Below, in pieces: positions 7,642 to 39,794 of a stretch of 64,000 bases of DNA. The notes under the pieces are model-generated. The model was given only the letters and a program-made list of their open reading frames with translations, was not told where the DNA came from and ran no database searches. The stretch is from the IMG/VR virus record IMGVR_UViG_3300036760_000522, positions 186,001-250,000 of that record. One strand, 5' to 3'. How positions within the stretch are numbered: position 1 is the stretch's first letter; each line of letters opens with the position of its first letter. A program made the translations under genes and the position numbers.

Positions 7642-7748
7642 ACACTACCGCCCAAATCCGAACACCTACTAACGAACCGGATCAAAAGTGTTTTCCAGCG
7701 GCATCAGAAGGGACCTCACGTCTCAAAAAACAGCTGTTTCATCTGTTT

Positions 7749-8096: not shown

Positions 8097-8124
8097 GCGA
8101 AAGTGTTTTTGCTCTGTCTAGGTA

Positions 8125-8436: not shown

Positions 8437-8456
8437 TCATTGGTGTTTCAGTATCC

Positions 8457-9515: not shown

Positions 9516-9523
9516 GTACTAAC

Positions 9524-13223: not shown

Positions 13224-13268
13224 GTATTCTCCTTTGCCGTGCTCTCTAGAACACCGGCTGAACAGTCG

Positions 13269-14093: not shown

Positions 14094-14101
14094 AGTTCAC
14101 C

Positions 14102-14491: not shown

Positions 14492-14502
14492 CTCGGCTCA
14501 GA

Positions 14503-14889: not shown

Positions 14890-14913
14890 GGAAGGTCCTC
14901 CACTTTCAATCGA

Positions 14914-15195
14914 TCAGGCGTGACAGGCGGCTTTGAGGTTCTTCAACGTCGTTGCGTACGGGAGAGCTGCAACCTTGCCCTGACTCGAGTACCAACCGTT
15001 TCGCAAGGAGTCGAAGTTAGCCAGGCTCGTGTCGAGAACGAAAGTCGTTTTGTTGTTTGCCTTTTCCGTCCGCAGCAGCGGGCATCCAGCAACAGACAAG
15101 TAGGCCGCGAAATACAAGTCAGTAGTTTTGTACTGAGGAGAAGGCGTTGAGTTGGGTTCTGATTTTTGCGGTGAGTTGGGTTCTGATTTTTCCAT
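14914..15195 (-). CDS. DUF5659-like small protein
   Basis: YKTTDLYFAAYL...TTFVL motif. Confidence 0.7.
   Translation of the reverse strand: MEKSEPNSPQKSEPNSTPSPQYKTTDLYFAAYLSVAGCPLLRTEKANNKTTFVLDTSLANFDSLRNGWYSSQGKVAALPYATTLKNLKAACHA
15148..15191. repeat. 20-bp direct repeat, period 24 bp (KSEPNS x2)
   Basis: TGAGTTGGGTTCTGATTTTT at 15148 and 15172. Confidence 0.9.
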
Positions 15196-15288
15196 CTTGT
15201 TTTGGACCTAAAACGTCAATTGACGATAAAGGGATAGGGTTTCTGGATCGGAGGTCGAATCGGGATATTGATTTTGAGTGTGACGGTC

Positions 15289-16458
15289 CTACAAAATGTT
15301 GATCGTAGGAGCCGAGTCCGTCACTGCCATTGTATCCCCCAACACAACATCGAGTGAATTGATGGATACTTGTGAGGATACGTGTCCTCGAACTTGCACA
15401 CGAACCAGCGTGGCCAACGTAAGACCTGAAACCAACGAAGCCGGAACCACGATTGAAGTCGCCGAAACGGATCCACCTGCCTGCTCAATTCGAACCTGAT
15501 CAAGCCGAATGATCGTCTGTCCTGTAATCAACTGAACGACAGTTTCCTTGCTGTCGAACGAGCCAAGGCCTACACCCGTAATCGTCACGGTCCCAGCCAA
15601 AACCACGAGTGTGATGTTGGGCAGTGGCGCAGTGAAGAGCGAAACTCCGTCGTCTTGTATCACAGACACAGCAGCGCCATTGGGCAAACCGCGACGAGAA
15701 TCTGGGTTGAAAGCTGAACTCCGATAGCCAAAAATCTGGCCCACCATGAAGCTTTCAACTGCGACAGTGGTTTCGATAAACTGCGGCGCAATCGCGTCCG
15801 CCAAATTCTCATGCGTACCACGACTCGTTGGCACCAAAGACAAAGCAGATGAATTGGTGCTTGCGCCAACCCCACTGATCGTTGCGACCGACACGTCTAA
15901 AACTCCGGCAACCGGGTTCAAAGCCGTGATGTACGTCGCAGCAGCAGGCATCGTCCGAGCAAGAGCCGCAGCACCAAGACCGAGAGGTGTGTTCGCAACA
16001 GACCCGTTCGCAACAGAGTCAATTTCCACATAGGAAGAGACTCCATGTGGACCTTCCAGAGCGACTCTGGAACCGCTTCCTGTGCCTTGGCGTGCGGTGA
16101 CACCCAAGGCAGTCAAAACCGTGTTGAGAGCGGCCAGAAGCGTTGTCAGTGAAGCGTACGCCGCTTGCGGTACAAGTACGACGGTGAACGATGATGCTGA
16201 GCTCGTTCGAATCCGCAAGTCGTCGTTACCTGCATTGATCGTCAACGGAAAGGATCCGACAATGTCAGATCCTTGGATGGTAGCTCCCGCCCCTGTCGTG
16301 GCGTGTGCCAAGACAGCTTCAACTTCCGCCACCGTGGGCCGTCCCACATAACGCTCTTGACCACGAGGCTCAACAGGGGCTCGATGTTGTGAGATGGGTT
16401 CTACGTCTCCGATGAGAAGAGGCCCCGGTAGATCGCCACGAACAACTCCTAAACGCAT
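15289..16458 (-). CDS. Virion structural protein with C-terminal IPT/TIG-like Ig domain
   Basis: Ala/Gly/Ser/Thr/Val rich; TVTITGVGL...GGSVSATSIVV; paralogous ends with 16838..17443. Confidence 0.75.
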   Translation of the reverse strand: MRLGVVRGDLPGPLLIGDVEPISQHRAPVEPRGQERYVGRPTVAEVEAVLAHATTGAGATIQGSDIVGSFPLTINAGNDDLRIRTSSASSFTVVLVPQAAYASLTTLLAALNTVLTALGVTARQGTGSGSRVALEGPHGVSSYVEIDSVANGSVANTPLGLGAAALARTMPAAATYITALNPVAGVLDVSVATISGVGASTNSSALSLVPTSRGTHENLADAIAPQFIETTVAVESFMVGQIFGYRSSAFNPDSRRGLPNGAAVSVIQDDGVSLFTAPLPNITLVVLAGTVTITGVGLGSFDSKETVVQLITGQTIIRLDQVRIEQAGGSVSATSIVVPASLVSGLTLATLVRVQVRGHVSSQVSINSLDVVLGDTMAVTDSAPTINIL

Positions 16459-24171: not shown

Positions 24172-26070
24172 TCACACAAAAACAAAAACCTGCTCAGTAG
24201 CTGGCACCTTTCCTATTCTACCAAGAGGTAGAACCAAGGTGCGCTGCAAACGAAACCCTGCGAGACCTGCCAGTCGCACCAACTCGTCCGCAATCGGGAA
24301 CCGTTGTGCCCCTCGTCGCACATTCTTTGTGTTCACACAAAACAAACCACCGTCACGTAAGTGTCGTTTGGACTTCAACACGAACGGTTGAAGAAACCCT
24401 TCCAGCCAAAGATCCCACGTTGAATACCTGACCCAACTCTGCGCCGCACTATCAGAGTACTTCTCGACCGAAAAGTACGGAGGACTCGTTAGTACAAGAT
24501 CCGCGCGCAAGTCTGCCAGGTCCACGTCTTCGAACGGGTATTCAAAAAAGTCAAAATGGCCAACCACCGATTGCAAAGCTGTGTATGACGCACCAGCTTT
24601 AGGATGAGGATCAACGCCAACGTATCGTCTACCGCTTGCCAGAGTCCCTACAGCACGACCACCATAACCAGCACACGGATCCAAGACGGTACCGCCAACA
24701 GGGCACAACGCCTCCACCAGAGCCTTTGCAAAACAAGGGCGAAAATTGGTCGGGCCACGAACAACGGCCTGCAAAGCGCGAAACACACGTACAGGCTGCA
24801 CAGGATCACCAACAGCCAATTGAAACTTCACGGCCCTACGCACATATTCCTGGTCGTACCACGCCGATCGCACTGAAGGACGATCTTGATATCTAGCGTC
24901 ATATCTGTGTGGAAAGAACCGCTGACACAGCTTCGATCCTGAACGTGTTTCACGCACCAATCTATCTTCCACTAGTTCAGTTTTGGACAACAACAGCTTA
25001 GACCAATCTATCTCCGCCTCCTCCATCGACGGCACAACCAAAGGCAGCACAGTTCTCGAAAGAACAGCGACGACGCTCTCTACATACGTTAGTGTGCGAG
25101 CGTCCAGCCTCTTGATCGCAAGACTCGCAGTTTCAACGTCCAACTCGACTTTGCTGCTACGTGAAGGACGACCTGTACATCCAGGGGCTAAACCGTGTTG
25201 TTTCCTCCAACGCGAAACACTTGTGCGGGACACTTGAAGTACATCAGCGATGTCGTCGGTATGGAGGCCCCGATCAAATAACGATCGCAAACGATCGTAG
25301 GTCAACAGATCTCGAGGCGCTAAACCAGCCTTGGGCGTCTTGACAGCGATCTTGTAACCGAGGCTAGGATGTAGATGTGGACGCACCAAATCCAAAAACC
25401 TGTTCAGCGCTGTGCGCCCTTGAATGTGGAGGGATCCGTCCTCGTAGACTTTGCTTCTGATACCCAGACTTGTCAGAATTCCAACCTGCACGCGTTGATC
25501 CTCTAGTGAGGGACCAACAGTGATCCTTACGTAATTACCTGAACGCGATCCATCATCCATGAACCAGACAGCCAGAGCTAAGCCGTCTACCCACTCTACT
25601 GGCAAGCGTGTAAACGTTTTGGGCCCTGAACCTGACGGGTAGAACAACTGCCAATAAGGAAAGAGGGCTCGACACGCATGTGTGAACAATCGATGACCCA
25701 GATACTCCCCTTTATCTGCTTTCCGAATGGCTACTGTAAACACCCCCCACTCCTCAGCTTTCCACAACAAATACTCATGTTGTTTGACGGAGTGGTGTTC
25801 TTGGTATCGTGCTGTATTTGTACCAGAACGCCGTAAGTTACCGTCACCTAACATTGATCCAACTAGAATTGACCTCAGACGATCGGTCAAAGTATCTGGG
25901 AGCCCAAAGCGATCACTCTTAGTCAGTGTCGGAATGCCGTACTTCTGGCGAAGACGACTAACGTGTGCTTGGGAAATACCAAACACACGACCAATTTCGG
26001 TCTCTGTCTTGTGCTGATCAAGATAAAGGTCCCGCAGAAATTGTTCCGTCAATCGTGTCGACACCTTCAC
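24172..26070 (-). CDS. HTH + double-motif LAGLIDADG endonuclease + HTH + amino-DNA methyltransferase fusion
   Basis: LVGSMLGDG and LAVWFMDDG (LAGLIDADG_2); IADVLQVSRTSVSRW (HTH); VLDPCAGYGGR and LTSPPY (MTase). Confidence 0.85.
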   Translation of the reverse strand: MKVSTRLTEQFLRDLYLDQHKTETEIGRVFGISQAHVSRLRQKYGIPTLTKSDRFGLPDTLTDRLRSILVGSMLGDGNLRRSGTNTARYQEHHSVKQHEYLLWKAEEWGVFTVAIRKADKGEYLGHRLFTHACRALFPYWQLFYPSGSGPKTFTRLPVEWVDGLALAVWFMDDGSRSGNYVRITVGPSLEDQRVQVGILTSLGIRSKVYEDGSLHIQGRTALNRFLDLVRPHLHPSLGYKIAVKTPKAGLAPRDLLTYDRLRSLFDRGLHTDDIADVLQVSRTSVSRWRKQHGLAPGCTGRPSRSSKVELDVETASLAIKRLDARTLTYVESVVAVLSRTVLPLVVPSMEEAEIDWSKLLLSKTELVEDRLVRETRSGSKLCQRFFPHRYDARYQDRPSVRSAWYDQEYVRRAVKFQLAVGDPVQPVRVFRALQAVVRGPTNFRPCFAKALVEALCPVGGTVLDPCAGYGGRAVGTLASGRRYVGVDPHPKAGASYTALQSVVGHFDFFEYPFEDVDLADLRADLVLTSPPYFSVEKYSDSAAQSWVRYSTWDLWLEGFLQPFVLKSKRHLRDGGLFCVNTKNVRRGAQRFPIADELVRLAGLAGFRLQRTLVLPLGRIGKVPATEQVFVFV

Positions 26071-26289: not shown

Positions 26290-27174
26290 TCAAACTCTGG
26301 TCACGACCAGGCGGCTGACAGCACGTGGGTTGAACGCGCCGATGCCGATATTTTCAAAGACCGAAAATCCGATCAGACGGTTCTTGGGATCGTCGGCGCT
26401 CAAAACCGTGAGTTCTGTACGAACCGGGAACCGGCCAAAGTTCTCGGCTTCCGCGCAGATGTAGATGAACCCAACCGGTACGATTCTGCTCGTGATGATC
26501 TGCGCTCCCCACAACACAGCTTGTAGGCCTGTGTTGAGAAGGACGGCCTGGCTTTCGATATCCAGGATGTCCCGACCGAACTTGCGGATGTCCGCATAGT
26601 CGGTCGCGTTCATGAAGATCCGGGCGACCCGAAGCCCGTGACGCTCGACCTCTGCGAATGCGTCGGCCAAGAACGACGGTGAGACCGGTGCGACCACAGC
26701 CAAGTCAGGGTTGGTCTGACCGGGTAGTGTGTCGAAGCCGCTGACAGCAACGCTGTCAACGATTGCGAAACCGCGCTCGTCTTCAGCTGCTGCAATCTGC
26801 GCTTTCGCCAGGTCCTGAGCACGCTCGATCATGTCGAACCTGCGCTCCTTGATCTGGGAGAGCGGGATCTCAGGATTCGAAGCAATCTCGAAGACCGGGA
26901 AGATCACACGACGTGACTTCTGGATCGACTGGATGTTGGCGCCTTCTTCACCGACGACGAACGCCGTGACTTCAGGATCCTTGTCGTAAACAGGCAAGGC
27001 GCCGTCAGGCAGCTCTTCCACGAGGAAGCTCTTCCGGATGACTGCCACGTAGTCGCGTCGTAGACGCAACGATTGAATCATCGAAGCCGCAAGCTTCTCA
27101 CGCCCTTGCGGTGTTCTGATGTGTTCGCCGATTAGGCGCTGTCGGATCTCGTTACTGATTATGGAAGCTGACAT
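26290..27174 (-). CDS. Major capsid protein (HK97 fold)
   Basis: GREKLAASM...RRDY...ELPDGALPVYD, IFMNATDYADIRKFG, LWGAQII, IGAFNPRAV; follows protease, scaffold and decoration genes; strong terminator. Confidence 0.88.
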   Translation of the reverse strand: MSASIISNEIRQRLIGEHIRTPQGREKLAASMIQSLRLRRDYVAVIRKSFLVEELPDGALPVYDKDPEVTAFVVGEEGANIQSIQKSRRVIFPVFEIASNPEIPLSQIKERRFDMIERAQDLAKAQIAAAEDERGFAIVDSVAVSGFDTLPGQTNPDLAVVAPVSPSFLADAFAEVERHGLRVARIFMNATDYADIRKFGRDILDIESQAVLLNTGLQAVLWGAQIITSRIVPVGFIYICAEAENFGRFPVRTELTVLSADDPKNRLIGFSVFENIGIGAFNPRAVSRLVVTRV

Positions 27175-27194: not shown

Positions 27195-27818
27195 TCAGAC
27201 CCGGAGATCCAGAACCAGTAGTGTGTTGTTAGCGTCTGGGGCGATTCGTACGATCCCCATGAGGGTGACGAAGTCCCGGTTGTTCTGACCGGCTACGTTC
27301 CACTCGTAGGCATCTTCAATACGATTCGTCAAAAGACCATTGACGCTCGCGTAGAGTTTGTCGCCCTGCGCATACGTGAGAGCCGCAGAGCCACCAACTT
27401 GTTGTTGTGTTTCCCACAGGCTCACAGCGTCTGTGCCGAAACCACAGAGGAATGGGCCTCGACCCGAAGCGACGCCAGGCGTGTTCTCGAATGGGTTTCC
27501 GAGAGCGTCGTTGATGAAGAGACCGAGGGGCTTCTGGCCAGCAACGTAGGCCGCAGCAATCTGCACGGGGCCGCCGATGTAGCCGTTACCACCATCGGGG
27601 CGTGTGAACGCCACCGTGGCTCCCAAAACACCAACTCTGGTGATCCCACTCAAAGTGGTTGACTTGTTGGCTACTGCGGTGACGACTGGGGGATTCGCTT
27701 GCGTGAACGCATCTACCGTCAGGATCCCAATTGAGTTGCGGATCCCAGAGTGTAGAATTTGTACACGACCAGAGGTTTCCCTGAAGTCACCCGAGCCTTG
27801 ACCGATACTCAAAGGCAT
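27195..27818 (-). CDS. Capsid decoration/cement protein
   Basis: Position immediately before the MCP; PLGLFIND, YAQGDKLYASVNGLLT, MGIVRIAP. Confidence 0.7.
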   Translation of the reverse strand: MPLSIGQGSGDFRETSGRVQILHSGIRNSIGILTVDAFTQANPPVVTAVANKSTTLSGITRVGVLGATVAFTRPDGGNGYIGGPVQIAAAYVAGQKPLGLFINDALGNPFENTPGVASGRGPFLCGFGTDAVSLWETQQQVGGSAALTYAQGDKLYASVNGLLTNRIEDAYEWNVAGQNNRDFVTLMGIVRIAPDANNTLLVLDLRV

Positions 27819-27901
27819 AGATTTCTCCTAGCTGGGGTGGATTCGTCCCAGAAGGTGCTGGGCCACGATTCATTCCATCTGAGGCGCTAGTCTGATTTGG
27901 A

Positions 27902-29071
27902 CTAACGAAAAGCGTGACTCACGTCGGGTGGGGCGTCCCACAGACCTGCGAGGTTGTCAGATCCCGTCGCCGGGAGGTCTGATCCTGGAGTGCCGCCTAT
28001 ACGGCTCACACCCGGAGGTTTTGTTCCAAGTGTGCGACTTGCGGTCTTGACCCTGGTACCCGGATCATCAGCACTGGCAGTGATGCCAAAAGCTGCTTGA
28101 GCATTCTGGGCTTCAGGTGCTGAAGCGAAGATCTGTTGCAGATCAGGGTCCACTGCCACGTCATCGACCATCATCGACGGGCCCATGTCCTGAAAGAAGC
28201 CCATGTCATCATTGGCCATCTGCGGCTGTTGTTGAACGGGTTGCTGCTGCTGCTGAGCTTGCTGCTGCGGAGGCTGTTGTTGCAGCTGCTGCACAGCTTG
28301 TTGCACCATATCTTGGAGCTGAGCTTCTAGCTGCTGCTGTGACTGTACCTGCTGTTGCTGGACTTGTTGCTGAGCCAATTGCTGCACCATCTGGTTAGCA
28401 GTGACTGTGTCCCCCTGCTGCATGGCTGCGATCGCTTTTGCAGCAAGCTTCGCACGAGCTTCCTTCTGCTGTTCCTTATCATCATCTTGCTGCTGATCCT
28501 GAGCTTGCTTGCTCTTGTCTTTGTCAGCGTCGTCTTGCTGCTGCTGATCCTGAGCTTGCTTGCTCTTGTCTTTGTCAGCGTCGTCTTGCTGCTGCTGCTG
28601 CTGATCCTGAGCTTGCTTGCTCTTGTCTTTGTCAGCGTCGTCTTGCTGCTCGTCATCAGAGGCGAGACGTCGAACGGTATCGATCAAAACGCTATCGGGT
28701 AGGTGCATGAACCCGAGGGCCTGATCCTCCAAGAGTTGTGTCGAAGCGTTCTTGAGGAGATGCTTGGAAAGCTGGAGGCAGACCTCAGCTTTCTTCTCGA
28801 GCTTCTCGTCGTCTTCTTGCTCTTCGGCGGCGGTCTTGAAAGTGTCAGGCCTGAACGCAGGCATCCCGATCTCGTTTACACGAGTGTAGCCAGTAGAGTC
28901 GTACTCGTCCTTCCACCGACTCGGTGATACATCTTCTGCAAAGTCTGAAGGCGTACCGGTCACGTATGCGTCGGCAGCGGGTTGGGCCTGCAAATTCTCA
29001 GGCCGCATCGAATCAGGATCAGCCGCCAACTTGGCAATTCTCTCGCGGTCCCATGTAGATCGTTCACGCAT
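27902..29071 (-). CDS. Scaffolding/core protein with polyQ and acidic repeats
   Basis: Position between protease and capsid genes; low complexity; many (K/R)xA motifs. Confidence 0.75.
   Translation of the reverse strand: MRERSTWDRERIAKLAADPDSMRPENLQAQPAADAYVTGTPSDFAEDVSPSRWKDEYDSTGYTRVNEIGMPAFRPDTFKTAAEEQEDDEKLEKKAEVCLQLSKHLLKNASTQLLEDQALGFMHLPDSVLIDTVRRLASDDEQQDDADKDKSKQAQDQQQQQQDDADKDKSKQAQDQQQQDDADKDKSKQAQDQQQDDDKEQQKEARAKLAAKAIAAMQQGDTVTANQMVQQLAQQQVQQQQVQSQQQLEAQLQDMVQQAVQQLQQQPPQQQAQQQQQPVQQQPQMANDDMGFFQDMGPSMMVDDVAVDPDLQQIFASAPEAQNAQAAFGITASADDPGTRVKTASRTLGTKPPGVSRIGGTPGSDLPATGSDNLAGLWDAPPDVSHAFR
28485..28650 (-). repeat. Three tandem copies of DDADKDKSKQAQD(Q)n with n = 6, 4, 3
   Basis: Near-identical DNA units differing in CAG number. 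Confidence 0.92.
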
Positions 29072-29147
29072 AACTAAACTTCTCCGTCCGTTTTCGTCCC
29101 CGCAGAAAACTTGGTCACCTTCACCCAGATCACCGATAAAAAAGGAA

Positions 29148-30566
29148 TCACGTAGTTCCTAGGTCAAAGAGCTGACCTTTCTCGATCAAAGCTTTTTGCT
29201 CCGCCGCTGTGAGCACATGACCCAAAACCCTCTGACAAACCGCTAAAAATGCGGTATTTCCGCCATGTCGACGTGGACCTCCCACCTCAAGAACGGTTCG
29301 GTAAACCCGATCAGTCCCCGCCTGCTTGATTCGACCCATTTGGTCCAAAACCCTAGATATTACAAGTACTTCCGCTCCTGACAAAGATTTGTTGTTCGCA
29401 ACACGACGCCAACCACCAAGTCGATGCAAGACAAAACCTGTCAAGATTCGTTGCACACAGTCCGGATTCCGTATTCGAGCAGACAAGTAGCGCTCGACTG
29501 ATCTGAACTCGGGGATCTTAGAAGCTTCGTGTGTGAGGCCTCCATTCGTGTCATCTCGCAGAGTTGAACGAGGTGGAACAGGCCCGTTCAAGTCACTTCG
29601 AACCTTCTCCAAAGCCTTCTGCCGAATCAATTTAGCGACCTCATCAACAGCGGTATCAATATCGCTCGGGGAGCCAGAAGGCGTCACCTCGTTTGACGGA
29701 TCAACGAAGGGGTTCTGATCTTGTGCTGCTTTAAGCGAAGCACCAAGAGTCGCCGTTGGTGGACGTAAAGGCAAAACTTGGTTGAGCTGTGATGCGGCAG
29801 CTTCGCCTGGAAAAAGGTTACGAACAACTGCACCCTTGAATGCCGGATTCGCAACCCAAGATGCCTCGATGAATTTTACGCTGTCATTTTCTGAGGCGTT
29901 GCCACACAACTCTGCCACTTTGTGTGTCTTCCCAAAAGCGTCTTTGAACGTGTTTCCCTTCGCGTATTTTATGTGGCTGCAAAGCTCTGTGTCGTCAGTG
30001 GCCACGTTTCCGCAGAACGAACACTGGCTGTAGAGAATTGAACAACCCATGCTGAGAGAATTGATCTTCCCTGACTCGATCCCAGCAATCAAAGCTCGGT
30101 GCTTCCGATCAGTCGCCACCAAAATGTCAATGTAGACACTCGGGCCCGTGTCCCGGGCCACAGCGTCAATGATCCGTCCCTTGGAGAGCTCCTTGACCTG
30201 TAGGTGCTCCATGAAATTGTTGGCACCAATGAACGTACGATACGTTGCCAACAACAACGGACGGGACCACGCGTCGTTGTTGTTATTTATAAAACGAGAC
30301 GTCTCCGACGTGATGTAGTAATCAAGGAAACGCCGGTTGACTTCAAAGCTGCCTTGTAAGTGACGACCCAGTGGACCTGGACCATTTTCGGTATCCACTG
30401 ACGCCATGATCGTGGCGTGACTCAACAAGTACTGTGCCGGATCGTATTTCTGTAACACAGTGCTCTGTGTAGCAACCTTGCGCCCAGCGGTGACATGACG
30501 CTGCCAAGCATCAACTGAAGCCAAAGGCTCCGCGACTACTGCGTTGGCGTACTTAAGAAAGGCCAT
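29148..30566 (-). CDS. Prohead (maturation) protease with zinc-finger insertion
   Basis: NNNDAW, FMEH...SKGRIIDA, SLSMGC...CSFCG...CSH, FIEASWVANPAF. Confidence 0.8.
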   Translation of the reverse strand: MAFLKYANAVVAEPLASVDAWQRHVTAGRKVATQSTVLQKYDPAQYLLSHATIMASVDTENGPGPLGRHLQGSFEVNRRFLDYYITSETSRFINNNNDAWSRPLLLATYRTFIGANNFMEHLQVKELSKGRIIDAVARDTGPSVYIDILVATDRKHRALIAGIESGKINSLSMGCSILYSQCSFCGNVATDDTELCSHIKYAKGNTFKDAFGKTHKVAELCGNASENDSVKFIEASWVANPAFKGAVVRNLFPGEAAASQLNQVLPLRPPTATLGASLKAAQDQNPFVDPSNEVTPSGSPSDIDTAVDEVAKLIRQKALEKVRSDLNGPVPPRSTLRDDTNGGLTHEASKIPEFRSVERYLSARIRNPDCVQRILTGFVLHRLGGWRRVANNKSLSGAEVLVISRVLDQMGRIKQAGTDRVYRTVLEVGGPRRHGGNTAFLAVCQRVLGHVLTAAEQKALIEKGQLFDLGTT

Positions 30567-30750
30567 TTCTTTCCTGTTGCGTCACATGGCCGTCGACAGG
30601 GCACTTGTACATGTCTCGAGCCACACAAAACATCTCCGCACCGCACTCTGGACAAATCACGCGAAGCGTCGGACGAAGCACTGCACCTGTCTGCCCACCG
30701 GGGTAGACAGGTTTGACTTCAACGACATCTCCATACTTCACGAACGGCAC
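30553..30750 (-). CDS. Small zinc-ribbon protein
   Basis: CPECG...CPVDGH; starts PFVKYG, like the AFLKYA start of the protease. Confidence 0.65.
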   Translation of the reverse strand: MPFVKYGDVVEVKPVYPGGQTGAVLRPTLRVICPECGAEMFCVARDMYKCPVDGHVTQQERNGLS

Positions 30751-30752
30751 AA

Positions 30753-31013
30753 TCAGCCTTCCAGCAATTTGATTGTCGAACGAAGTGTTTGACCGTGGCC
30801 GCTTACCAACAGCGTTTCGCAGAGATACCGAGCCGCAACGTGCCCCTTGAAGCTGTCGAGAAAGGTCTTCAAACGTTGCTTGTCATCAGTCTTGAGGATC
30901 TGTTGCAAGTCATTGAGAACCTCTGGACGGATACTGCCTGCGGTTACACACTCCTGATAGGCGTGTGCCGCTTGTAACAAGGCTTGTTTGTTCGTCATCA
31001 CACCAATCACCAC
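30753..31013 (-). CDS. Hypothetical protein
   Basis: Fills the gap; start uncertain. Confidence 0.6.
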   Translation of the reverse strand: MVIGVMTNKQALLQAAHAYQECVTAGSIRPEVLNDLQQILKTDDKQRLKTFLDSFKGHVAARYLCETLLVSGHGQTLRSTIKLLEG

Positions 31014-31669
31014 CCAACAGGGGCGCCTTCCGGTCCCAAAATATCAGCTTGTCGAATCAAGTAGAGGTCTCGGGGACAAGCGAACAGTTTGACCTTCTGT
31101 CCTTTGCTCATCTTGTACGTGGTACGTCGCATGCTCGTCCCACACCTCGGACAATTCGGGCGGCCAATCTCAACTTCCGAACGTGTTGCACGATGTTGTC
31201 GATTCTGTGAAAACCAATACGTGGCTTGCTTGTCAGCAAGACCGGACCAGTAGAGGGACTCCGCAAGAGCCGCAAATCTGTAGAACTTCGCAGTTTCCTG
31301 TCGTATGGTTCTGTCCCCAATTTCAGACCCGTACCGCCTCCATTGATCATCGTAAGAGGCAACTTCAGACAGACCTGCATGAAACGATCTGGCCAGCTCG
31401 CGGTAGAACTCCGGGTTCTCGACCAACCACCAAACTGCGGCTGACTTCGTGCCGAACCCATTCACCGAAGACGGAAGACACACCGCGAACGTGATTCCTA
31501 CCTTAGCTAGAGACTCCTCCGTCGACTGTTGGTCGAATGGCCACGCAACCTTGATGTTAGGAGAGACCTCTACGATTCGCCCAACGTAGGGCGACAAACC
31601 GTGCGACCCGAACTTCTGAACCAAGTCACCGGGGCCGAACGAGCGATCGTAGTCCCAGTAGTTGGACAT
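31007..31669 (-). CDS. Hypothetical head-module protein with C-terminal zinc ribbon
   Basis: CPRCG...ACPRD. Confidence 0.75.
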   Translation of the reverse strand: MSNYWDYDRSFGPGDLVQKFGSHGLSPYVGRIVEVSPNIKVAWPFDQQSTEESLAKVGITFAVCLPSSVNGFGTKSAAVWWLVENPEFYRELARSFHAGLSEVASYDDQWRRYGSEIGDRTIRQETAKFYRFAALAESLYWSGLADKQATYWFSQNRQHRATRSEVEIGRPNCPRCGTSMRRTTYKMSKGQKVKLFACPRDLYLIRQADILGPEGAPVGW

Positions 31670-31674
31670 TCATT

Positions 31675-32610
31675 TCACGGTGCGAGAGCGCGCCCTGTAG
31701 ATGACTTGCCGTCCTGAACCGCCTGTGTTTGGTCGTCAGCGTAAGCCGCCATGTAGGGCTCATCAGCGTCGGTCTGTATGGGCCTCGAAGGAGAATTGAA
31801 CGTCGACATGTACGACTCGTCGGAATCGCTCTTCAAAACCTTGGCGTTCTTCAGGGTCTCAACTTGACGTTTAGCCAACGAGCCCTGTCCGTACATACCG
31901 GCTTCGACACGATCCGCGATCTTGTCCAAATGGTTGACAAGCCCCTTGGCTGTGTCAAACGGCATGCCCCAAGACGCGTGTCGCTCCTGAATTGTGTTTG
32001 CAGCTGTATCGAGGTTGCTCAAAACCGTATCGACTGCTGTCTTCTGTTCTTTCGTCATAACTGTTCCTCTCGTACTTGACTGAATTGTCAAAAGAGTATT
32101 CCCAACCCCTGGCTCAGACCGACCAGATAACTTGGCAAGCAAGCGGTTGTAGACCATGGGATCCAGGTCCGTGGTGGTCGTAGGCCCGGCACCGCGTATC
32201 GCCAGATCCAAAGCTGCTCGATACTTGGTCTCAGGATCCATCAGACGCAGAAGCTCAGAATTCAAGCGTTCACGAGCAAGCCTAAGTATCAAGCTCTCAT
32301 CGTGGTCACGACGTTGCGTCCACATAGCTCCGGCCGGAGGCTTGTGATCCTTGGGATCGACGCCGTGGTAAACAGCTTCAACCAACTTCGACATCGATTT
32401 TCGGAAATCATAAGAAGATCCGCCAATCGATTTGTAGTTCTTGCTACGGTCCGGATCGTTGTCTGTATCTGGGTCCCGCTCGGGTTCAGGATCGACTTGG
32501 TTGCGCTGCCTGTCGTGCCGTGGAGGCTTGGATCGAGGGGACTCCCTGACCAGACGAGTCTCTTCGTCCTCTTCACGCTCACCGACAGTTTTAGTCGCCC
32601 ACAACTCCAC
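31675..32610 (-). CDS. Hypothetical head-module protein
   Basis: 311-aa ORF; twin C-terminal motifs SDSDESYM and TDADEPYM. Confidence 0.75.
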   Translation of the reverse strand: MELWATKTVGEREEDEETRLVRESPRSKPPRHDRQRNQVDPEPERDPDTDNDPDRSKNYKSIGGSSYDFRKSMSKLVEAVYHGVDPKDHKPPAGAMWTQRRDHDESLILRLARERLNSELLRLMDPETKYRAALDLAIRGAGPTTTTDLDPMVYNRLLAKLSGRSEPGVGNTLLTIQSSTRGTVMTKEQKTAVDTVLSNLDTAANTIQERHASWGMPFDTAKGLVNHLDKIADRVEAGMYGQGSLAKRQVETLKNAKVLKSDSDESYMSTFNSPSRPIQTDADEPYMAAYADDQTQAVQDGKSSTGRALAP

Positions 32611-32641
32611 AAAAGAGACGGGCGAACAAACAGTTCACTGG

Positions 32642-33727
32642 CTACGCAGAGCGTGGCGCCAGCTGTTCGTGCAGGTATCCCGCGGGACCTTGCTGCCTCA
32701 GGTTCGTCGGATCAGGCACAAGACCCCACTTAGGCGGGTACCACTGAGGTATCGGAAATGGCTTAGGGCGGTAGCGCTTCTTGATCCTGACGCGCTTGAG
32801 CATCCCTTTGAAAGCGGAATGTGAAGCCCGGGAGTACTTACCGATCTCGCAGAACAAGTTCTGACAATCGATCAGTTTCAGGGGACGTCCCCACAAGCCC
32901 TTCCAGAGTAGTCCTCGAGAGTGGAACTCCTCTTCGGCTCTATCACAGACAACCTTGATGACGTCTGCTTCCGACAAGTCGCCGATATCCGTGAAGCACT
33001 TCCGGATCCCGTCTTTGGCACCAAGACCTGCAACGACGTAGTCGTTCTCCGAAAAATTACAGATCGGGCTATAGTTGATATCGACTGCCAACTGAAAAGC
33101 GAGGAACGGACCAAACGACGGGATCGCATGAATCCTGTGGTAAAGGGTCTCGTACGTGTCAGCCGTGTACACAAGCATCGGCAGCTCACCCAACATCGAC
33201 TGCTCCAACAGGCGTAAATGTGCGTGGTGCTTGCTCCTCAAGTTGTCAATGTTTGGACACGGGAGTACGTAAGCGCTGTTGTAGATGGCCTCTCCATAGA
33301 CCTTCAACAGGTCCAGCGACCTTGCGTACAATGCGTATGAGAAGGTTTTCCACGTCAACTCGCCATGTTGTGAAGTCAACCATTCCCAAGTCTCGATCTT
33401 GTTGAACATACGAAAAAGCATGATCCGGAAAAGGATTTCCTCAGGCGATTGGATCCCTTCGTAGATCACGTGGCGAACCAGGTACTGGCTCACACGATCC
33501 GACACCCGGTACACATTCGTGAAACGGTACCCGTTGAGAATCGGATTCGTAGTCCACGGAGGATCCTCTCCGTGGAATCGACGATAGAAAACGTCCTGAC
33601 GAGCGTACGCGAAAGACCAATACAGGTCGTAAATGTCTGTTACAACGAGATGTCGGTTACCAGAGATACGTATGGCCCTCTTGGCCATCGACTTCGGCGC
33701 TAAGATCTTACCCAACTTACCTGTCAC
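32642..33727 (-). CDS. aGPT-PPase1 / 5-hmdU DNA kinase helical-domain family protein (thymidine hypermodification)
   Basis: YWSFAYARQDVF...PPWTTNPIL...RFTNVYRVSDRVSQYL, LFRMFNKIETW, GPFLAFQLAVD, DCQNLFCEIGKY. Confidence 0.8.
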   Translation of the reverse strand: MTGKLGKILAPKSMAKRAIRISGNRHLVVTDIYDLYWSFAYARQDVFYRRFHGEDPPWTTNPILNGYRFTNVYRVSDRVSQYLVRHVIYEGIQSPEEILFRIMLFRMFNKIETWEWLTSQHGELTWKTFSYALYARSLDLLKVYGEAIYNSAYVLPCPNIDNLRSKHHAHLRLLEQSMLGELPMLVYTADTYETLYHRIHAIPSFGPFLAFQLAVDINYSPICNFSENDYVVAGLGAKDGIRKCFTDIGDLSEADVIKVVCDRAEEEFHSRGLLWKGLWGRPLKLIDCQNLFCEIGKYSRASHSAFKGMLKRVRIKKRYRPKPFPIPQWYPPKWGLVPDPTNLRQQGPAGYLHEQLAPRSA

Positions 33728-35565
33728 CCGAACCGACCTTCTTCCTGTTGTTGGGCTTCATCTTTGTGATTCATCTCGAGCTTCAGGTACTTGGAAATAC
33801 GTTCCAAGACATCCGTCTTGTCAACCAAGAGACGCCCCACCTCGTTGTAGAGCGAGCGCAAAACCTCATTGAATATAGCGTCGTTGACAGTGAAAAGGTC
33901 ACGTTCGATTTTGGACTTTGTATCACTCGGGTCGATATTCAACGTCTCAAGAATGAGGTCGATTGAGATCGATCCCTTCGAGTACAGATTGTACAGATCG
34001 TTGAATGTATCTTGGCTGTCTCTCAGCGGCAAGCGTGTGAAAGACAGCTTCGGATGCAACACGACTTCCTGTCCCCACTCGTCCTCCTCGATGAACCCCA
34101 TACGTCTTGCTATCGGGCGGAAAAGGTACTCCTCGACGTACTCCTGCAAGATCTCCCGAAGATGCAAGTAACGTTGATTGATGACCTCAAGCTTGAGACG
34201 GTCACCGGAGTACAAAGACTCCCCAGACATCAAACTTTCCGTCACGCCGAGACCTGCCAAGATTCTACGTTGGACTTGCTCATACTCCGCTGACAAATCC
34301 AGGAGACGATCTCGGGCCCCCATCTCCTCCCAGTGAACTTCATAGTTGGCGACAATCGAGTAGTCAGGATCGACAAGCGCCAGATCCACCTGCTCACGCA
34401 ACGCGTCAGTATCGATATCGCTCAACCCTTCGGCCCACACGATGCGCTTAGGAGTCATTGCCCGAGACGCGATGGACGTCTGAGCCTGCCGAAGTTTATC
34501 AACGTAGATCAGCGACCTAAGGCATCTCCCCAATATAGGTTGACCTATACTGATGTCAGCGTCTTTGCTGCCTGTCAAAATGTAACCGAACGATCCTGCG
34601 TCTGGATCGGTACCAAGGGGTATTGTCTTGCCTGCTTCGAGACATGTGCGAACTTCATTCGGAATCTGTTCGACCAATTTTTTCGCGTCTACATCTCCGG
34701 TTTTCGCACGCTCAATCATTTGACGGTCGCGCTCAGACGGAATCAACTCAATGAGAGGACGGTCACTGTAGCTGAACGTGGTGATTTTTACTTTATCAAT
34801 AGGTATTACTATCAGTCGATCCCACCCTGCATAGTGTTTCTTGTAGTAAGCTGATTCGGCCGCGTCCGTCTCGGGGGTGTCTTCCCAAATTGTCTTGTCT
34901 TGATCGACTGTAGTTCCGTCCTCACGCAAGACGGCTTCCTTGATCGTCTTCTTCGTGCGACCCAAGTCTTCCGGGACTTCAACTGAAGAGTCCTCCGCAA
35001 AAATGCACGTGACGCCGTCGAGCCAGTAATGATGTACGATCGTGATCAGTCGTTGGAACAACTTGATCTTCTTACACATCCGCTCGAAGCGAGACAGAAT
35101 GTACTTTCCGTAATTCTCCGGTGAGCTGAAACCCTCTGGTGCTCTGAGCGGTTTCGGGGCAGTCAGTCGAACTTTCGAGAGAGGAAGCTCTGTGTGGATG
35201 TCAATGGCTTGTCCGACGATCTCATCCGAGTTGTAGAAGTGCCGGAAAATCTCTCGTCGCTCACGAACGCTTTGCGGCAGCTCGAGAAAGTCCGTGGATA
35301 GCTGGGGGCTGTAGAAATTGCTCTGGGAGCTTTGCATGGTCCCACCAGCAGCACCCAAACCAATCCCCGTCCCGCCTCCAAGGCCCATGCTGCTGAGTCC
35401 GAACCCACCCAAAGCACCACTCGACTGAACACGACGAGCAAGACGCTCCTTGAACGTCAGCTGGCTACTGTACGCCCCAGACACGTAAGGCTTGGTTAAT
35501 CTGCGCGGATCTGGAACCTGAATCGCAGCGGAATACCGTCCCGGAAAATTTGAGTAAGCCATCAA
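33724..35565 (-). CDS. Portal protein
   Basis: FYNSDEIVGQAIDIHTELP, ILGRCLRSL, ILAGLGVTESLMSGE, IARRMGF; lies between terminase and head genes. Confidence 0.8.
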   Translation of the reverse strand: MMAYSNFPGRYSAAIQVPDPRRLTKPYVSGAYSSQLTFKERLARRVQSSGALGGFGLSSMGLGGGTGIGLGAAGGTMQSSQSNFYSPQLSTDFLELPQSVRERREIFRHFYNSDEIVGQAIDIHTELPLSKVRLTAPKPLRAPEGFSSPENYGKYILSRFERMCKKIKLFQRLITIVHHYWLDGVTCIFAEDSSVEVPEDLGRTKKTIKEAVLREDGTTVDQDKTIWEDTPETDAAESAYYKKHYAGWDRLIVIPIDKVKITTFSYSDRPLIELIPSERDRQMIERAKTGDVDAKKLVEQIPNEVRTCLEAGKTIPLGTDPDAGSFGYILTGSKDADISIGQPILGRCLRSLIYVDKLRQAQTSIASRAMTPKRIVWAEGLSDIDTDALREQVDLALVDPDYSIVANYEVHWEEMGARDRLLDLSAEYEQVQRRILAGLGVTESLMSGESLYSGDRLKLEVINQRYLHLREILQEYVEEYLFRPIARRMGFIEEDEWGQEVVLHPKLSFTRLPLRDSQDTFNDLYNLYSKGSISIDLILETLNIDPSDTKSKIERDLFTVNDAIFNEVLRSLYNEVGRLLVDKTDVLERISKYLKLEMNHKDEAQQQEEGRFG

Positions 35566-35984
35566 GCTTCGATTTCACCGAACAAGTCGTCTAAGGTGTC
35601 AGGCGTGGAAACAGGAGCCAAGCGGCGTGTGGGTTTCTGTTGCTTCTCTCTAGACTGCTGCTCTTTTCGCACACGGTCCTCTTCAGCCTCTGCCCTAGCG
35701 CGTTCTACAATTCTCTCCACCACACTGGTTCGACGAAGACCTTGAGCGACTGCCCCGGCAAACCTCAGGTAAGCGTTGGCAAAAATAAGGTATCCAGACG
35801 CCACAGACGATGAGGGAGACGATCTACGTGCCGTCTCCCGCAAATTCACCGACGATTGGTACACGTCGCGAGTCACACGCTCCAAATCCGCCACCAAACC
35901 CTTGTGGGTATCGTGCATCGAAAGCAACTCCCGATCAGAGTCAACTTCGGCATTGGGCGCGGTAGGTGTGGGCACGGTCGGCAT
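35562..35984 (-). CDS. Hypothetical helical protein
   Basis: 140-aa ORF. Confidence 0.7.
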   Translation of the reverse strand: MPTVPTPTAPNAEVDSDRELLSMHDTHKGLVADLERVTRDVYQSSVNLRETARRSSPSSSVASGYLIFANAYLRFAGAVAQGLRRTSVVERIVERARAEAEEDRVRKEQQSREKQQKPTRRLAPVSTPDTLDDLFGEIEA

Positions 35985-35986
35985 AG

Positions 35987-36505
35987 CTAGATAGACACCT
36001 GTATCCCGAGAAACTCACTGTTCACAGATTTTGGCAATTGTGCAACATGTCCAACCACCGCTGCCGGGGCAAATAAGCTGCCTGACAGTGTCAATTCGTC
36101 TTCAGGTGTCCAGAAACCACGACTTGAAAAATACAAGAGTTGGTTGACTGTGTAGATCAACAGAACCAACGGACCGCCACCAATGCGTGAGGCGTAGGTG
36201 TAGCGCTCGTAAGTAGACGTAGAAATAAGACACCCACCAAAAAGCATGGTTGCGTATCGATAGACAAGCTGTTGGCGAGTCGTCGAAGCAAAGTCGTCCC
36301 CTGGTTCATCTGATCCCCAGATCAAAAACCCACAAGCTCGCCCGTCAGAATAGTCCACCGTCCGATCATCAATCGGCACATCGGCCCAACGAATCCCTTG
36401 GCCCCCAGGCCATCCTCCAACAACCATGGTTGGCTGAATGGTAACGGTCGTCGAGTCTTCCTTGTAGAAGACGACACAATCCCGTGTACGAAGCGTGTCC
36501 AACAT
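35987..36505 (-). CDS. Decoration-protein paralog 3 (172 aa)
   Basis: Start reassigned to ATG 36505 (MLDTLRTRDCVVF) to match the paralogs. Confidence 0.8.
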   Translation of the reverse strand: MLDTLRTRDCVVFYKEDSTTVTIQPTMVVGGWPGGQGIRWADVPIDDRTVDYSDGRACGFLIWGSDEPGDDFASTTRQQLVYRYATMLFGGCLISTSTYERYTYASRIGGGPLVLLIYTVNQLLYFSSRGFWTPEDELTLSGSLFAPAAVVGHVAQLPKSVNSEFLGIQVSI

Positions 36506-36510
36506 GAAGA

Positions 36511-37032
36511 TCACATAATCGTTTGAAGGGTCAAATAGTTGGCCGTAATGACGGTTGGTGCTTGAACAACAAGGCCTGTGTAGTTTGTGTTTGGAGCTCG
36601 AGGGTCGGCTGACAAGGTCCACTCGTCTTCCACTGTCCAAAAACCACGAAGAGAGAAACGCAGCTTTGAACCTTCCACGTAGACCAAGGGGACCAAAGGG
36701 CCGCCCCCTGTACGAGAGGTGTAAGTGTACTGCTCAAAAGTTGTCGTAGCGATCAGCCAACTGCCAATGCACAAAATGACAGCGCCGTATCTAACCTGGT
36801 TGCCGACAAGCGAGATGTACTGATCCGAGGATTCATCTGATCCCCAGAGGGCAAAACCTCCGAACGAACCGTCTGAGTACGTCGTAAGAAATTCGTCTTG
36901 CGGAGAATCCTGCCACTGAAATCCTTGACCACCAGGCCATCCTCCAACCTGAGCCACAGGCGTGATCGCAACTGGATAGGCGTCGCTTCGGTGGAAAACG
37001 ACACAATCCCGAGTCCTGAAAAGTTCGGCCAT
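36511..37032 (-). CDS. Decoration-protein paralog 2 (173 aa)
   Basis: RTRDCVVF, GGWPGGQG, GFALWGSDE, SLRGFWTVEDE. Confidence 0.85.
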   Translation of the reverse strand: MAELFRTRDCVVFHRSDAYPVAITPVAQVGGWPGGQGFQWQDSPQDEFLTTYSDGSFGGFALWGSDESSDQYISLVGNQVRYGAVILCIGSWLIATTTFEQYTYTSRTGGGPLVPLVYVEGSKLRFSLRGFWTVEDEWTLSADPRAPNTNYTGLVVQAPTVITANYLTLQTIM

Positions 37033-37550
37033 TACAAAGTCGTCTGGATGGTCAAGTAGTTCTCGGTCACCGCGGTTGGTGCTTGAACAACAAGGCCTGT
37101 GTAGTTTGTGTTTGGGGCCCGTGGATCAGCCGAGAGCGTCCACTCGTCTTCCACTGTCCAAAAACCACGAAGAGAGAAACGCAAACGGTCTGAAGCGTTG
37201 TACGTCAGTGGTACAAGGGGACCTGCTGTTCGAGATGCGTAGGTGTAGCGCTCGTAAGTCGAGGTCATGATAAGCCACGACCCTACAGCCATTGTCGAAA
37301 CTCGGTAAAACGGCTGGTTACGTGTCATCGATGTGAACTGATCCGAGATCTCGTTAGAACCCCAAAGAATGAAGCCGCCCGGCTCACCATCAGAGTAGGA
37401 AACTAAAAACTCATCCCGCGTAGAAAGAACCCAACGAATCCCTTGGCCCCCAGGCCATCCTCCCGCGGCCAACGCTTCAGACACAGTGACGGGGTACTCA
37501 TCACTGCGAAACAAGATCACGCAGTCTCGTGTGCGAAATTGCTCTGACAC
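37032..37550 (-). CDS. Decoration-protein paralog 1 (172 aa)
   Basis: RTRDCVIL, GGWPGGQG, GFILWGSNE, SLRGFWTVEDE. Confidence 0.85.
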   Translation of the reverse strand: MSEQFRTRDCVILFRSDEYPVTVSEALAAGGWPGGQGIRWVLSTRDEFLVSYSDGEPGGFILWGSNEISDQFTSMTRNQPFYRVSTMAVGSWLIMTSTYERYTYASRTAGPLVPLTYNASDRLRFSLRGFWTVEDEWTLSADPRAPNTNYTGLVVQAPTAVTENYLTIQTTL

Positions 37551-37553
37551 GTC

Positions 37554-37802
37554 TCAGTCCTTGGGTGTTCGAGTACGTGTTGGCATCTTGCTCCACGCAG
37601 CTATTACTTTTTCCAACAAGCTGAGCTGTAACAGGGATCCACTAACCAGCGCCTCCCAGTTTCCTCGACACCTCCGAAACACATTTCGAATCGCAGCAAA
37701 GTCCTGTGGAGAAGTCACCAGGTCTTCTCCACATAAGTGGTCCACGAACTGACGAATCACACGATTCGCAAAGATCACGTCTGGTATCTCAACAGAATCC
37801 AT
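37554..37802 (-). CDS. Hypothetical protein
   Basis: 82-aa ORF; GAGG SD. Confidence 0.7.
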   Translation of the reverse strand: MDSVEIPDVIFANRVIRQFVDHLCGEDLVTSPQDFAAIRNVFRRCRGNWEALVSGSLLQLSLLEKVIAAWSKMPTRTRTPKD

Positions 37803-37808
37803 GCAACC

Positions 37809-39794
37809 TCAGAATCTGGCACGTCGAGGAACGAACCGCGGCGAAACCCCGTGGCGACGTGCCCGCATCATCTGGTATCGACGAGGCGTCATAGTTGTAT
37901 AGGTAGGGTCTCGCGAAAACAATGAGCCGTTGGCCGCATGTTTCTGATTTGCGAGAAACTCTGAAGAGAGGGACACAGCTCGTACGTATGCATCAGCAGA
38001 GTCGTCGAAAGAACCGTGCTTCTGAGGTGCTTGGACATTCACCATATACTTCGTCTTCAAAGTAGCCTGCAAAGCAAACAACTCCAGGATGAAATCCGAG
38101 TGCCGCTCTCCGTCACGAGCCCGCTCTGGAATAGGGAAGTCGTAGAGCCGAAGTCGACCGTCGTACATCAACATCTTGGTGTTTTGAAACATCTTGCTAC
38201 GTTGATCAGGTGTGAAAAACTGTGATGTGAATTGCTTGAGACCCTTCTTGTGCAACGCCTGCTCCAGAGGCAAACCGTTCCACCGGTCGAACAAGCCAGC
38301 TGTGACGTGAAACCACGAACAAACTAGCTCAATCCACTTGGCGATCTCGTCAAAATCTAGCCGTTCCACATCCTGCAAAGACTTTGCAAACTCTGTCGAA
38401 TAGCGACCTTCCAAATGTGGGTTTAGGTCTTTCCACTGACACCCTGCACGCCAAACCTCATGATAGTCCAGGACGACGCTGTCGCGCTCCGGGTGCGTGA
38501 TACAAATCACTGTACCGTCATTGACCAAACCTACGTCTAACCCCATCTGGTGAGGTTCACGAGGACGTGCACGAGACTTAGGTCTCAAGTCACGGTCGAC
38601 GCAAGCCAACAAGTCCGGCTTGCGTTCAATCCACCCAACGCTTTGATCGGAAAACCGGGCACCGTACTCCGTCATGAACACGACGGGGTTTTTGTGGTAC
38701 TCAGTCCGAAAGTAGGCGCCCGAGACTGTGGGGTTGACTTCCCAGGTCGGGGCTTGAATCGCCAAGGTGTAAGCCGCACCAGGATCGTTACGCATCGCCA
38801 AATCGTACTGGTCGAAAAACTTCCCTGACTTTCCTAAAGGTGATGAGATCAGGATGATTCTCGATTCAACGAGGGCTTCCTGTTGTGTCACGGAATCAAC
38901 GAGTATTCGTTTTGTGACTGGATCCTTTCGTGTGTAGGCCGCAGTCGAAGGCGTCAATGCCGAGTAAATCTCTTCAGCCGATCTTCCACCCTTAGTCAAG
39001 TAATGAGCGACCTCATCCAACACGATCAATATATTACCGGGACCACGCAAACTTCGTGCAACACAAGGTTTGAACGTCACACGAATCGACGCTTTACCGG
39101 AAAACGTCGTGTACTTACCGTCACTCTCTCGAGTAGAGACCCCGTGTTTCTCGAGATCACGCGGTGTACGAAAATTCATGAACGTGAGGTTGTTGTTGGC
39201 AATGAACGGCTTGAAATATGAACATCTCCCAACATGAGTTGCCACCTCATTGAACAACAATCCGGCTTGTTCCTTGTCCGTGCCAATGGACGTCAGCTGA
39301 ATCCGACTGCCATCAATGAGTCCGTAGTAAGCTTGAGGGTCATACAAATTCAGTAGCCGATAGACCTCATAGCTTGCAAAGATCCCTGCCATGGCAGTCT
39401 TGCCAGACCGTCGACCAACAGCCAAAACCAATTCACGTCGATCATATGAGGGCTCGTTGATGTTACAGCGACCCTCATTGTACAAATAGTGGAGGTACTC
39501 CACCTCCGTGAACTCGTACAACGTACGAGTTTTGAACATGTCCGTGATGATGATCCGATCTGTCAGATCATCCGGCAAACGATCCAACAGATCGAGTCCG
39601 TAGTAGAGCTTGATGATGAATCGCTGAACCGGGTAGAGCTTCATGCCGAGTCCCCAGGAACTCTCGGCATACGTGAGCACATCAAAAATCGGTGCTATTA
39701 CGTTGTTGTCACCATCTGCCTTGGCAATATCCCGACCAGCTTGTCGAATGAGTGATGCAAGCGACCCAGCGGGAGTCTCGATATTCGCAGCCAT
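37809..39794 (-). CDS. terL: Terminase large subunit
   Basis: Walker A GRRSGKT, Walker B LIVLDE, coupling motif ISSP, nuclease GLDVG, DRWN, DDSADA. Confidence 0.92.
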   Translation of the reverse strand: MAANIETPAGSLASLIRQAGRDIAKADGDNNVIAPIFDVLTYAESSWGLGMKLYPVQRFIIKLYYGLDLLDRLPDDLTDRIIITDMFKTRTLYEFTEVEYLHYLYNEGRCNINEPSYDRRELVLAVGRRSGKTAMAGIFASYEVYRLLNLYDPQAYYGLIDGSRIQLTSIGTDKEQAGLLFNEVATHVGRCSYFKPFIANNNLTFMNFRTPRDLEKHGVSTRESDGKYTTFSGKASIRVTFKPCVARSLRGPGNILIVLDEVAHYLTKGGRSAEEIYSALTPSTAAYTRKDPVTKRILVDSVTQQEALVESRIILISSPLGKSGKFFDQYDLAMRNDPGAAYTLAIQAPTWEVNPTVSGAYFRTEYHKNPVVFMTEYGARFSDQSVGWIERKPDLLACVDRDLRPKSRARPREPHQMGLDVGLVNDGTVICITHPERDSVVLDYHEVWRAGCQWKDLNPHLEGRYSTEFAKSLQDVERLDFDEIAKWIELVCSWFHVTAGLFDRWNGLPLEQALHKKGLKQFTSQFFTPDQRSKMFQNTKMLMYDGRLRLYDFPIPERARDGERHSDFILELFALQATLKTKYMVNVQAPQKHGSFDDSADAYVRAVSLSSEFLANQKHAANGSLFSRDPTYTTMTPRRYQMMRARRHGVSPRFVPRRARF

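Follow-up and report, generated by a model that had tools for sequence, protein, structure and literature searches.

A conserved trio of cement-type paralogues and a fourth homologue beside the capsid gene of an uncultured jumbo phage

The window analysed here is a stretch of 64,000 nucleotides, bases 186001-250000 of the IMG/VR virus record IMGVR_UViG_3300036760_000522, and its head gene module carries four genes whose products belong to one remote family with the fold of capsid cement proteins. One of them, encoding a protein of 207 amino acids (aa) that we call p207 (27195..27818), lies directly upstream of the major capsid gene; the other three stand in tandem as copies A (37032..37550), B (36511..37032) and C (35987..36505), together called the trio. 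Cement proteins are small trimers that sit at the three-fold and quasi-three-fold capsomer joints of HK97-fold heads and stabilise phage heads, and all four proteins very probably belong to this class. The record is 301,550 bp long and has direct terminal repeats, therefore its source is an uncultured jumbo phage. All genes of interest in the window are on the minus strand, and genetic code table 11 was applied throughout.

A first-pass annotation of this DNA had described the four open reading frames (ORFs), with p207 directly upstream of the capsid gene, as a decoration-protein family, and both points are supported. The fold and the role are already known; the strict set of three paralogues, accompanied by a fourth homologue in one capsid module and kept throughout a large uncultured clade, is new, and no description of a conserved three-paralogue cement set was found in the literature searched. 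We tentatively favour the reading that all four genes encode capsid cement proteins of the beta-tulip fold and that the trio co-assembles as an ABC heterotrimer on the capsid shell.

Fold and kinship of the four proteins

Copy A (172 aa, GTG start) is 65% identical to copy B (173 aa; E 3e-85) and 51% identical to copy C (172 aa; E 3e-57), and judged by these alignments the paralogy of the three is beyond doubt. The ATG start of copy C is nested in a longer ORF of 217 aa with a TTG start. Only 3 nt separate the stop of the preceding 82-aa gene from the start of copy A, the start of copy B overlaps the stop of copy A (TAATG), copy C follows copy B after 5 nt and is followed by a 140-aa gene after another 2 nt, and this gene in turn overlaps the portal gene. 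The string from the 82-aa gene to the portal is tightly packed and, as these junctions suggest, probably translationally coupled. Over codons ~121-160 the nucleotide identity of copies A and B is 78-98% versus 42-69% in the upstream windows, and their identity at third codon positions is 64% in the 3' third versus 32% upstream (36511-36700 compared with 37032-37190). This pattern indicates that the 3' thirds of A and B have been gene-converted in this lineage.

The structure of copy A was modelled with AlphaFold2 from a 45-sequence alignment (predicted local distance difference test score, pLDDT, 88.3; predicted template modelling score 0.84). Among solved chains the model matches 13 representatives at Z>=8 (VIA Z 11.6-8.1, 101-141 residues aligned), and all of them are capsid cement or decoration proteins from phages or an archaeal virus: HFTV1, two phiBB1 chains, Pam3, Patience, two FCWL1 chains, TW1, E217, Sf11, XM1, phiCD508 and Adjutor. 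The beta-tulip barrel of the model and its small mixed alpha/beta subdomain can be superposed on the solved cement proteins; residues 1-9, modelled with lower confidence, carry a conserved R-x-R-D motif. The lower-scoring matches are phi29 gp8.5 and gp12 (Z 6.8-7.2), P23-45, the herpesvirus triplex protein Tri2 (Z 3.6-4.3), MoeA/gephyrin and lambda gpD, and they are covered by the beta-tulip classes set out in the study of P74-26 (bioRxiv 10.1101/216911). Thus even the weaker matches of copy A form a signature of the beta-tulip fold. Other searches gave the same picture: Foldseek against the PDB found phiBB1 (E 3.6e-5), the second-ranking match in BFVD, a collection of predicted viral structures, was gp26 of Bacillus phage G (E 7.2e-5), and in the ESM Atlas copy A reached a template modelling (TM) score of 0.84 over 165 residues to a cluster whose annotated members are Phage_cement or XM1_gp53. 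The language-model neighbours of copy A, all below 0.8, were uninformative.

For p207 we have a low-confidence model (pLDDT 56.4), which was built before the deep alignment described below. All of its listed matches at Z>=2 are capsid cement or herpesvirus triplex proteins, headed by Pam3 (7.2), TW1 (7.1) and Sf11 (6.8); the cement matches span Z 7.2-5.2 and are the same proteins that copy A finds. Coming from such a model, this structural match is supportive rather than conclusive. The language-model neighbours of p207 carry PF22758 or PF23982, and the Atlas cluster found with copy A is among them.

The comparison covered the solved trimeric cement proteins of HFTV1 (8qsy), the Borrelia phage phiBB1 (8phs/8phq), the cyanophage Pam3 (gp6, 8hdt) and TW1 (its capsid-stabilising protein, 5wk1), and further the cement proteins of E217/Pa193, XM1 (gp53), P23-45/P74-26 and lambda (gpD). 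Copy A resembles them over its full-length fold, with lambda gpD reaching only Z 3.5, and the model of p207 matches the same set. The likeness extends to size (~130-210 aa), to location in the head module and to the position of p207 directly upstream of the capsid gene. Unlike the known cement proteins that were checked, those of the window are four to a genome, three of them forming an anciently fixed one-of-each set, and none has a significant match to a Pfam cement family. As a side observation, phiBB1 (8phs_AM/8phq_AD) and FCWL1 (9kmg_a/9kmh_ak) are each represented among the matches of copy A by two different sequence clusters (<40% identity), so some solved phages may carry more than one cement paralogue.

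The four proteins and 80 close relatives were scanned against Pfam and PHROG without a match, and neither PF22758 (Phage_cement), PF09956 (Phage_cement_2) nor PF23982 (XM1_gp53) rose above threshold with any of them. Among 79 distant representatives of the p207 family only 6 match Pfam cement models, and these weakly (best E 1.9e-4); three profiles run against the sequences of the PDB returned nothing meaningful. The membership of the four proteins is thus at the level of fold or superfamily, outside any Pfam family.

The first-pass annotation had aligned p207 with the trio by eye. In a single pairwise BLASTP comparison the link is weak (34% over 50 residues, E 6e-4), and a first hhalign comparison of the two families from shallow alignments (effective sequence number, Neff, 1.7) gave a probability of 57.6%. 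Because Pfam and PHROG name neither family, we built a deep alignment: an exhaustive representative search with the p207 profile collected 197 proteins at E<=1e-3, and with such 50%-identity representatives added, 79 diverse full-length members of the p207 family were aligned. Compared with the trio family this alignment yielded a probability of 93.0% (E 3.5e-7, 91 columns), which bears out the kinship seen by eye. The significant alignment joins the C-terminal halves, p207 111-206 with copy A 77-171. In the reverse direction the hidden Markov model of the trio recognises 18 representatives of the p207 family at E<1e-3 (best 3.6e-7) among the 150 listed, and in six-frame searches of whole genomes the deep p207 profile picks up copy C of the window (E 5.3e-6) and, in the related phage genome LR745208.1, its single trio-family gene (E 7.9e-6). 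At the profile level, then, p207 is a real if distant homologue of the trio. Of the three motif pairs from which the kinship had been read, two fall within the significant alignment. The third, PLGLFIND with PGGFILWG, lies outside it, and its sole support is transitive via gp333 of Tunturi_5, to which the p207 family aligns weakly (E 0.0027) and the trio family not significantly (E 0.17).

The setting of p207 is also that of a decoration gene. Its end is 20 nt from the start of the capsid gene, and the capsid protein of the window is 72% identical to that of LR745208.1, 47% to that of Tunturi_5 and 37% to gp27 of phage G. The hosts of these two cultured phages are a Bacillus (phage G) and a member of the Acidobacteriota, Tunturiibacter (Tunturi_5). 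Both have a 165-aa gene immediately before the capsid gene; that of phage G is gp26, which is annotated as capsid decoration and has reportedly been observed by proteomics and cryo-electron microscopy (PMC12484599). Therefore, p207, upstream of a related capsid gene as gp26 is, corresponds in position to a known decoration gene. The agreement of gp26 with the families of the window is in position and predicted fold only: hhalign detected no sequence homology (E 0.69 with the p207 family, 0.17 with the trio family), and the deep p207 profile finds nothing in phage G.

At the sensitivity used, a profile search of the whole genome recovered only the three trio genes and one p207. A candidate for a fifth member near the genome end, outside the window (G000:C1:299885-300043), matched copy A at 38% over 48 residues (E 0.004) and contains an internal TGA. 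It was dropped, since the family profile did not recover it at E<=1 and the match is probably due to chance.

Three types of tandem copy among relatives

A scan of IMG/VR gave 76 loci (numbered with the prefix L), 63 of them distinct, and the closest record to the genome of the window is IMGVR_UViG_3300037424_001177 (L006), in which copy A is 97% identical. Three tandem copies are present in 50 of the 63 distinct loci, two copies in eight (two of these at contig ends) and a single copy in five, all of which are fragments 6-23% complete. Searches of the whole records showed that two-copy records of 372 kb (78% complete) and 529 kb (100% complete) hold the third copy elsewhere, an arrangement that we denote 2+1. 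Thus the copy number does not vary freely among relatives, and three is strongly conserved. In one locus (L023, 10519-11030) the middle copy is split over two frames (profile positions 1-29 and 25-171), owing to a frameshift or else to an error in the sequencing.

A maximum-likelihood tree (quick search) of 173 copies from 65 distinct loci, including the window and LR745208.1, resolves three clades that match gene position, with support by the Shimodaira-Hasegawa-like approximate likelihood ratio test (SH-aLRT) of 96, 90 and 99, the last for type 3. Copies A, B and C of the window belong to types 1, 2 and 3, respectively. Tandem pairs are types 1 and 3, and the dispersed or singleton copies are all of type 2. 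Three first-position copies were placed just outside the type-1 clade in the free tree; constraining all 58 first-position copies to one clade gave a log-likelihood 28.65 above that of the free tree and was not rejected (p value of the approximately unbiased test, p-AU, 0.825).

Copies of one type share 57-61% identity and copies of different types 48-52%, and 40 alignment columns are conserved in all three types. A ranking by mutual information finds ~19 discriminating positions, clustered at 87-92, 118-124 and 137-167. Type 3, that of copy C, is the most differentiated, with W92, W137, R144, the loss of N147, K159 and G167 as discriminators. Every relative in this three-copy clade keeps one of each type, even where type 2 has moved elsewhere, and this pattern of retention shows that the three types are not redundant.

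The closest public record in the phage collection, the uncultured huge phage LR745208.1 (485 kb), differs in this respect. Its orthologue of p207 (43.5% identical) is again directly upstream of the capsid gene, whereas the trio family is represented by one divergent gene only (35% identity), which is a long-branch outlier on the tree; no second copy was found there even in a search with its own protein. No trio-family gene is detectable in phage G or Tunturi_5, and the search turned up no cultured phage that carries the trio. The simplest history would be that a second cement gene arose from the p207 lineage and was triplicated before the clade radiated, one of each product being kept since. 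The triplication would be old, and LR745208.1, in which the second gene is still single-copy, probably represents the state that preceded it.

Assembly on the capsid

We infer that the four proteins are present in the virion, where they would bind to the outside of the expanded capsid at the three-fold joints by means of a flexible N-terminal arm, with the major capsid protein as the presumed binding partner. p207 would most likely serve as the general cement and form homotrimers, in the way of gp26 in phage G. For the trio it is plausible, if by no means assured, that one chain of each type enters a pseudo-symmetric ABC heterotrimer (1:1:1) on the capsid shell. The three types are not interchangeable, as one of each is retained, and such co-assembly would be the most likely reason. 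We prefer the heterotrimer because paralogues with a homotrimeric ancestor and mostly common interface motifs should tend to assemble with one another, because the tightly packed gene string suits equal dosage, and because a related fold forms heterotrimers in herpesviruses. It could further be that the ABC heterotrimer is obligate and that, in a very large capsid, it shares out the non-equivalent three-fold sites with a separate homotrimer of p207, and we hold this fuller version with somewhat more doubt.

In the herpesvirus triplex (Tri1 + 2 x Tri2), beta-tulip proteins do form heterotrimers, and the link between phage decoration proteins and the triplex has been published (bioRxiv 10.1101/216911). 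The trio is like it in the beta-tulip core and, if the heterotrimer is real, in placing related but distinct chains at the three-fold sites of the capsid. Unlike the trio, the triplex proteins are much larger, with extensive insertions, form part of the capsid floor, are required for the procapsid to assemble and have a 1:2 stoichiometry. The trio consists of three compact 172-aa chains, and its heterotrimer would be one read from sequence. The large tulip-loop insertions and the capsid-floor role that are the hallmark of triplexes are absent here, as the length of the chains and their low similarity to Tri2 indicate, and we do not file the trio as a triplex member. Searches of the literature found no heterotrimeric cement protein of a phage.

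A prediction of the A+B+C complex with type-specific alignments was not specific, scoring 0.76 versus 0.67 when chain 2 was swapped for an unrelated protein, and it counts neither for nor against binding. Several observations weigh against the heterotrimer. Strong signature residues had been looked for as a mark of an ordered heterotrimer, and at a threshold of 85% there are only one or two per type; the ~19 softer positions are suggestive, not decisive. By their identities the types seem only modestly differentiated. The homogenised C-terminal third of A and B weakens the case further, as it leaves only the rest of the chain for a type-specific interface. Co-transcription of type 2 with types 1 and 3 is lacking in some genomes. 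The phage cement proteins of the beta-tulip fold that were checked are single-gene homotrimers (bioRxiv 10.1101/216911 among the sources). Finally, a one-of-each set fits three site-specific homotrimers equally well.

The last three points speak at the same time for such homotrimers, each occupying its own class of quasi-equivalent three-fold sites (e.g. penton-adjacent versus hexon-only) and sharing the lattice with p207: the conservation is then explained just as well, homotrimers are what the checked examples form, and a type 2 gene would be free to sit apart. Additionally, a genome of ~300 kb implies a large T number, and such a capsid offers many non-equivalent three-fold sites. However, there are few fixed differences between the types, and as the interface and capsid-binding motifs are largely shared in the 40 common columns, it would be difficult to keep each type to itself during assembly. 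Equal dosage is what the tight 1:1:1 gene string suits, whereas the numbers of different sites in a capsid normally differ. Three separate homotrimers are the main rival; we consider them rather unlikely, and retain the ABC heterotrimer as the preferred reading.

One would argue that a fold alone does not fix a function, and that a beta-tulip protein could have a job other than cementing, such as the base of a head fibre (as phi29 gp8.5), a surface display module or a factor for assembly only. The matches of copy A to phi29 gp8.5 and gp12 are in line with this idea, but those to cement proteins are stronger (Z 8-11.6) and full-length. A chain of 172 aa corresponds to the cement module alone, with no extra fibre or enzymatic domain, and the genes are always found in the head module, so that a non-cement job is improbable.

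The first-pass annotation proposed that the trio forms an asymmetric heterotrimer with a special role at the portal vertex, and this rested on the adjacency of the genes to the portal. It is correct that the trio lies between terminase and portal, and this order recurs in 41 of the 63 distinct loci with three copies and in 6 two-copy loci; an asymmetric trimer could moreover suit the symmetry-broken sites around a portal, as a matter of inference only. The phrase 'beside the portal' is approximate, since the 140-aa gene parts copy C from it. More importantly, the adjacency is not conserved. In at least five distinct loci (L056, L064, L070, L073 and L031) the order is protease, p207, capsid gene, homing-endonuclease insert and then the trio, with no terminase or portal near it, and in L065 neither terminase nor portal adjoins the trio. 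In six loci types 1 and 3 alone stand between terminase and portal, and type 2, as in the 2+1 genomes, is far off where the record is long enough. The single gene of LR745208.1 lies ~9 kb beyond the capsid gene. These alternative positions remove the sole basis for a portal-vertex role. Additionally, the best structural matches of copy A are general cement proteins of the shell, and the entries among them that are named 'portal' are ordinary decoration chains resolved in maps of portal vertices. Lattice sites cannot be read from sequence; nevertheless we see no reason to put the trio at the portal vertex, and judge a portal-specific role to be highly improbable.

It is hardly credible that the copies are redundant and kept for dosage only, as tandem paralogues of identical fold with local A/B gene conversion might suggest: such copies would be lost or homogenised, whereas here three orthologous types persist across lineages in which orthologues are only ~45-60% identical, their order is fixed, and the third type is kept even when dispersed.

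Neighbouring genes and significance

In order of transcription the module begins with a 198-aa protein, the large terminase subunit (37809..39794; 661 aa; phrog_2, E 3.3e-19), the 82-aa protein (37554..37802), copies A, B and C, the 140-aa protein (35562..35984) and the portal protein (33724..35565; 613 aa; phrog_16240, E 6.9e-26). There follow a 5-hydroxymethyldeoxyuridine (5-hmdU) DNA kinase, three unknown proteins, the head maturation protease (29148..30566; phrog_18299, E 7.2e-13; phrog_2774, E 4e-23), a Gln-rich scaffold-like protein (27902..29071), p207, the HK97-fold major capsid protein (26290..27174; PF05065, E 5.3e-6; phrog_2522, E 8.6e-51) and, last, a fusion of homing endonuclease and methylase.

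The 82-aa protein has no Pfam match and the 140-aa protein neither a Pfam nor a PHROG match; in most relatives they come before and after the trio, respectively. The homologue of the 82-aa gene sits in many relatives in an open frame of ~350-390 codons (~1.05-1.2 kb), and this long version lies upstream of the first copy in L009, L015-L019, L024-L026, L032, L034, L036, L043, L049-L050 and L054-L055. Terminase and portal genes are uninterrupted in the window; relatives have terminase and portal frames of ~1,100 aa that contain intein splicing and/or LAGLIDADG domains (L011 at 6368-9730 and 12691-16047; also L023, L028, L020, L042, L061 and others).

The product of 27902..29071 is a putative scaffolding protein by its composition and its position between protease and p207, with a weak PHROG match; it is extremely Gln-rich, and its translation holds three near-identical copies of a DDADKDKSKQAQDQQQ-type unit. 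The kinase (361 aa; PF18723, E 6.3e-96), encoded directly downstream of the portal gene at 32642-33727, suggests by its family that the phage may hypermodify thymidine in its own DNA. The 632-aa fusion just after the capsid gene (24172-26070) combines a LAGLIDADG homing endonuclease, helix-turn-helix domains and an N6/N4 DNA methylase. A similar insert in L058 (6488-9055) follows the capsid gene and parts it from the trio.

The clade that carries the trio is widespread, with hundreds of homologues on contigs of up to 620 kb. Two families whose database relatives number from several hundred to more than 1,200, and which Pfam and PHROG do not recognise, can now be annotated as cement-type proteins of huge phages. 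If the trio is a heterotrimer, one would learn from it how the many non-equivalent three-fold sites are handled in very large capsids. The herpesvirus triplex, for which an origin from decoration proteins of phages has been proposed, would then have a parallel on the phage side. The trio would also be, with a single gene in LR745208.1 and three types here, a living example of the change from a homotrimer to a heterotrimer.

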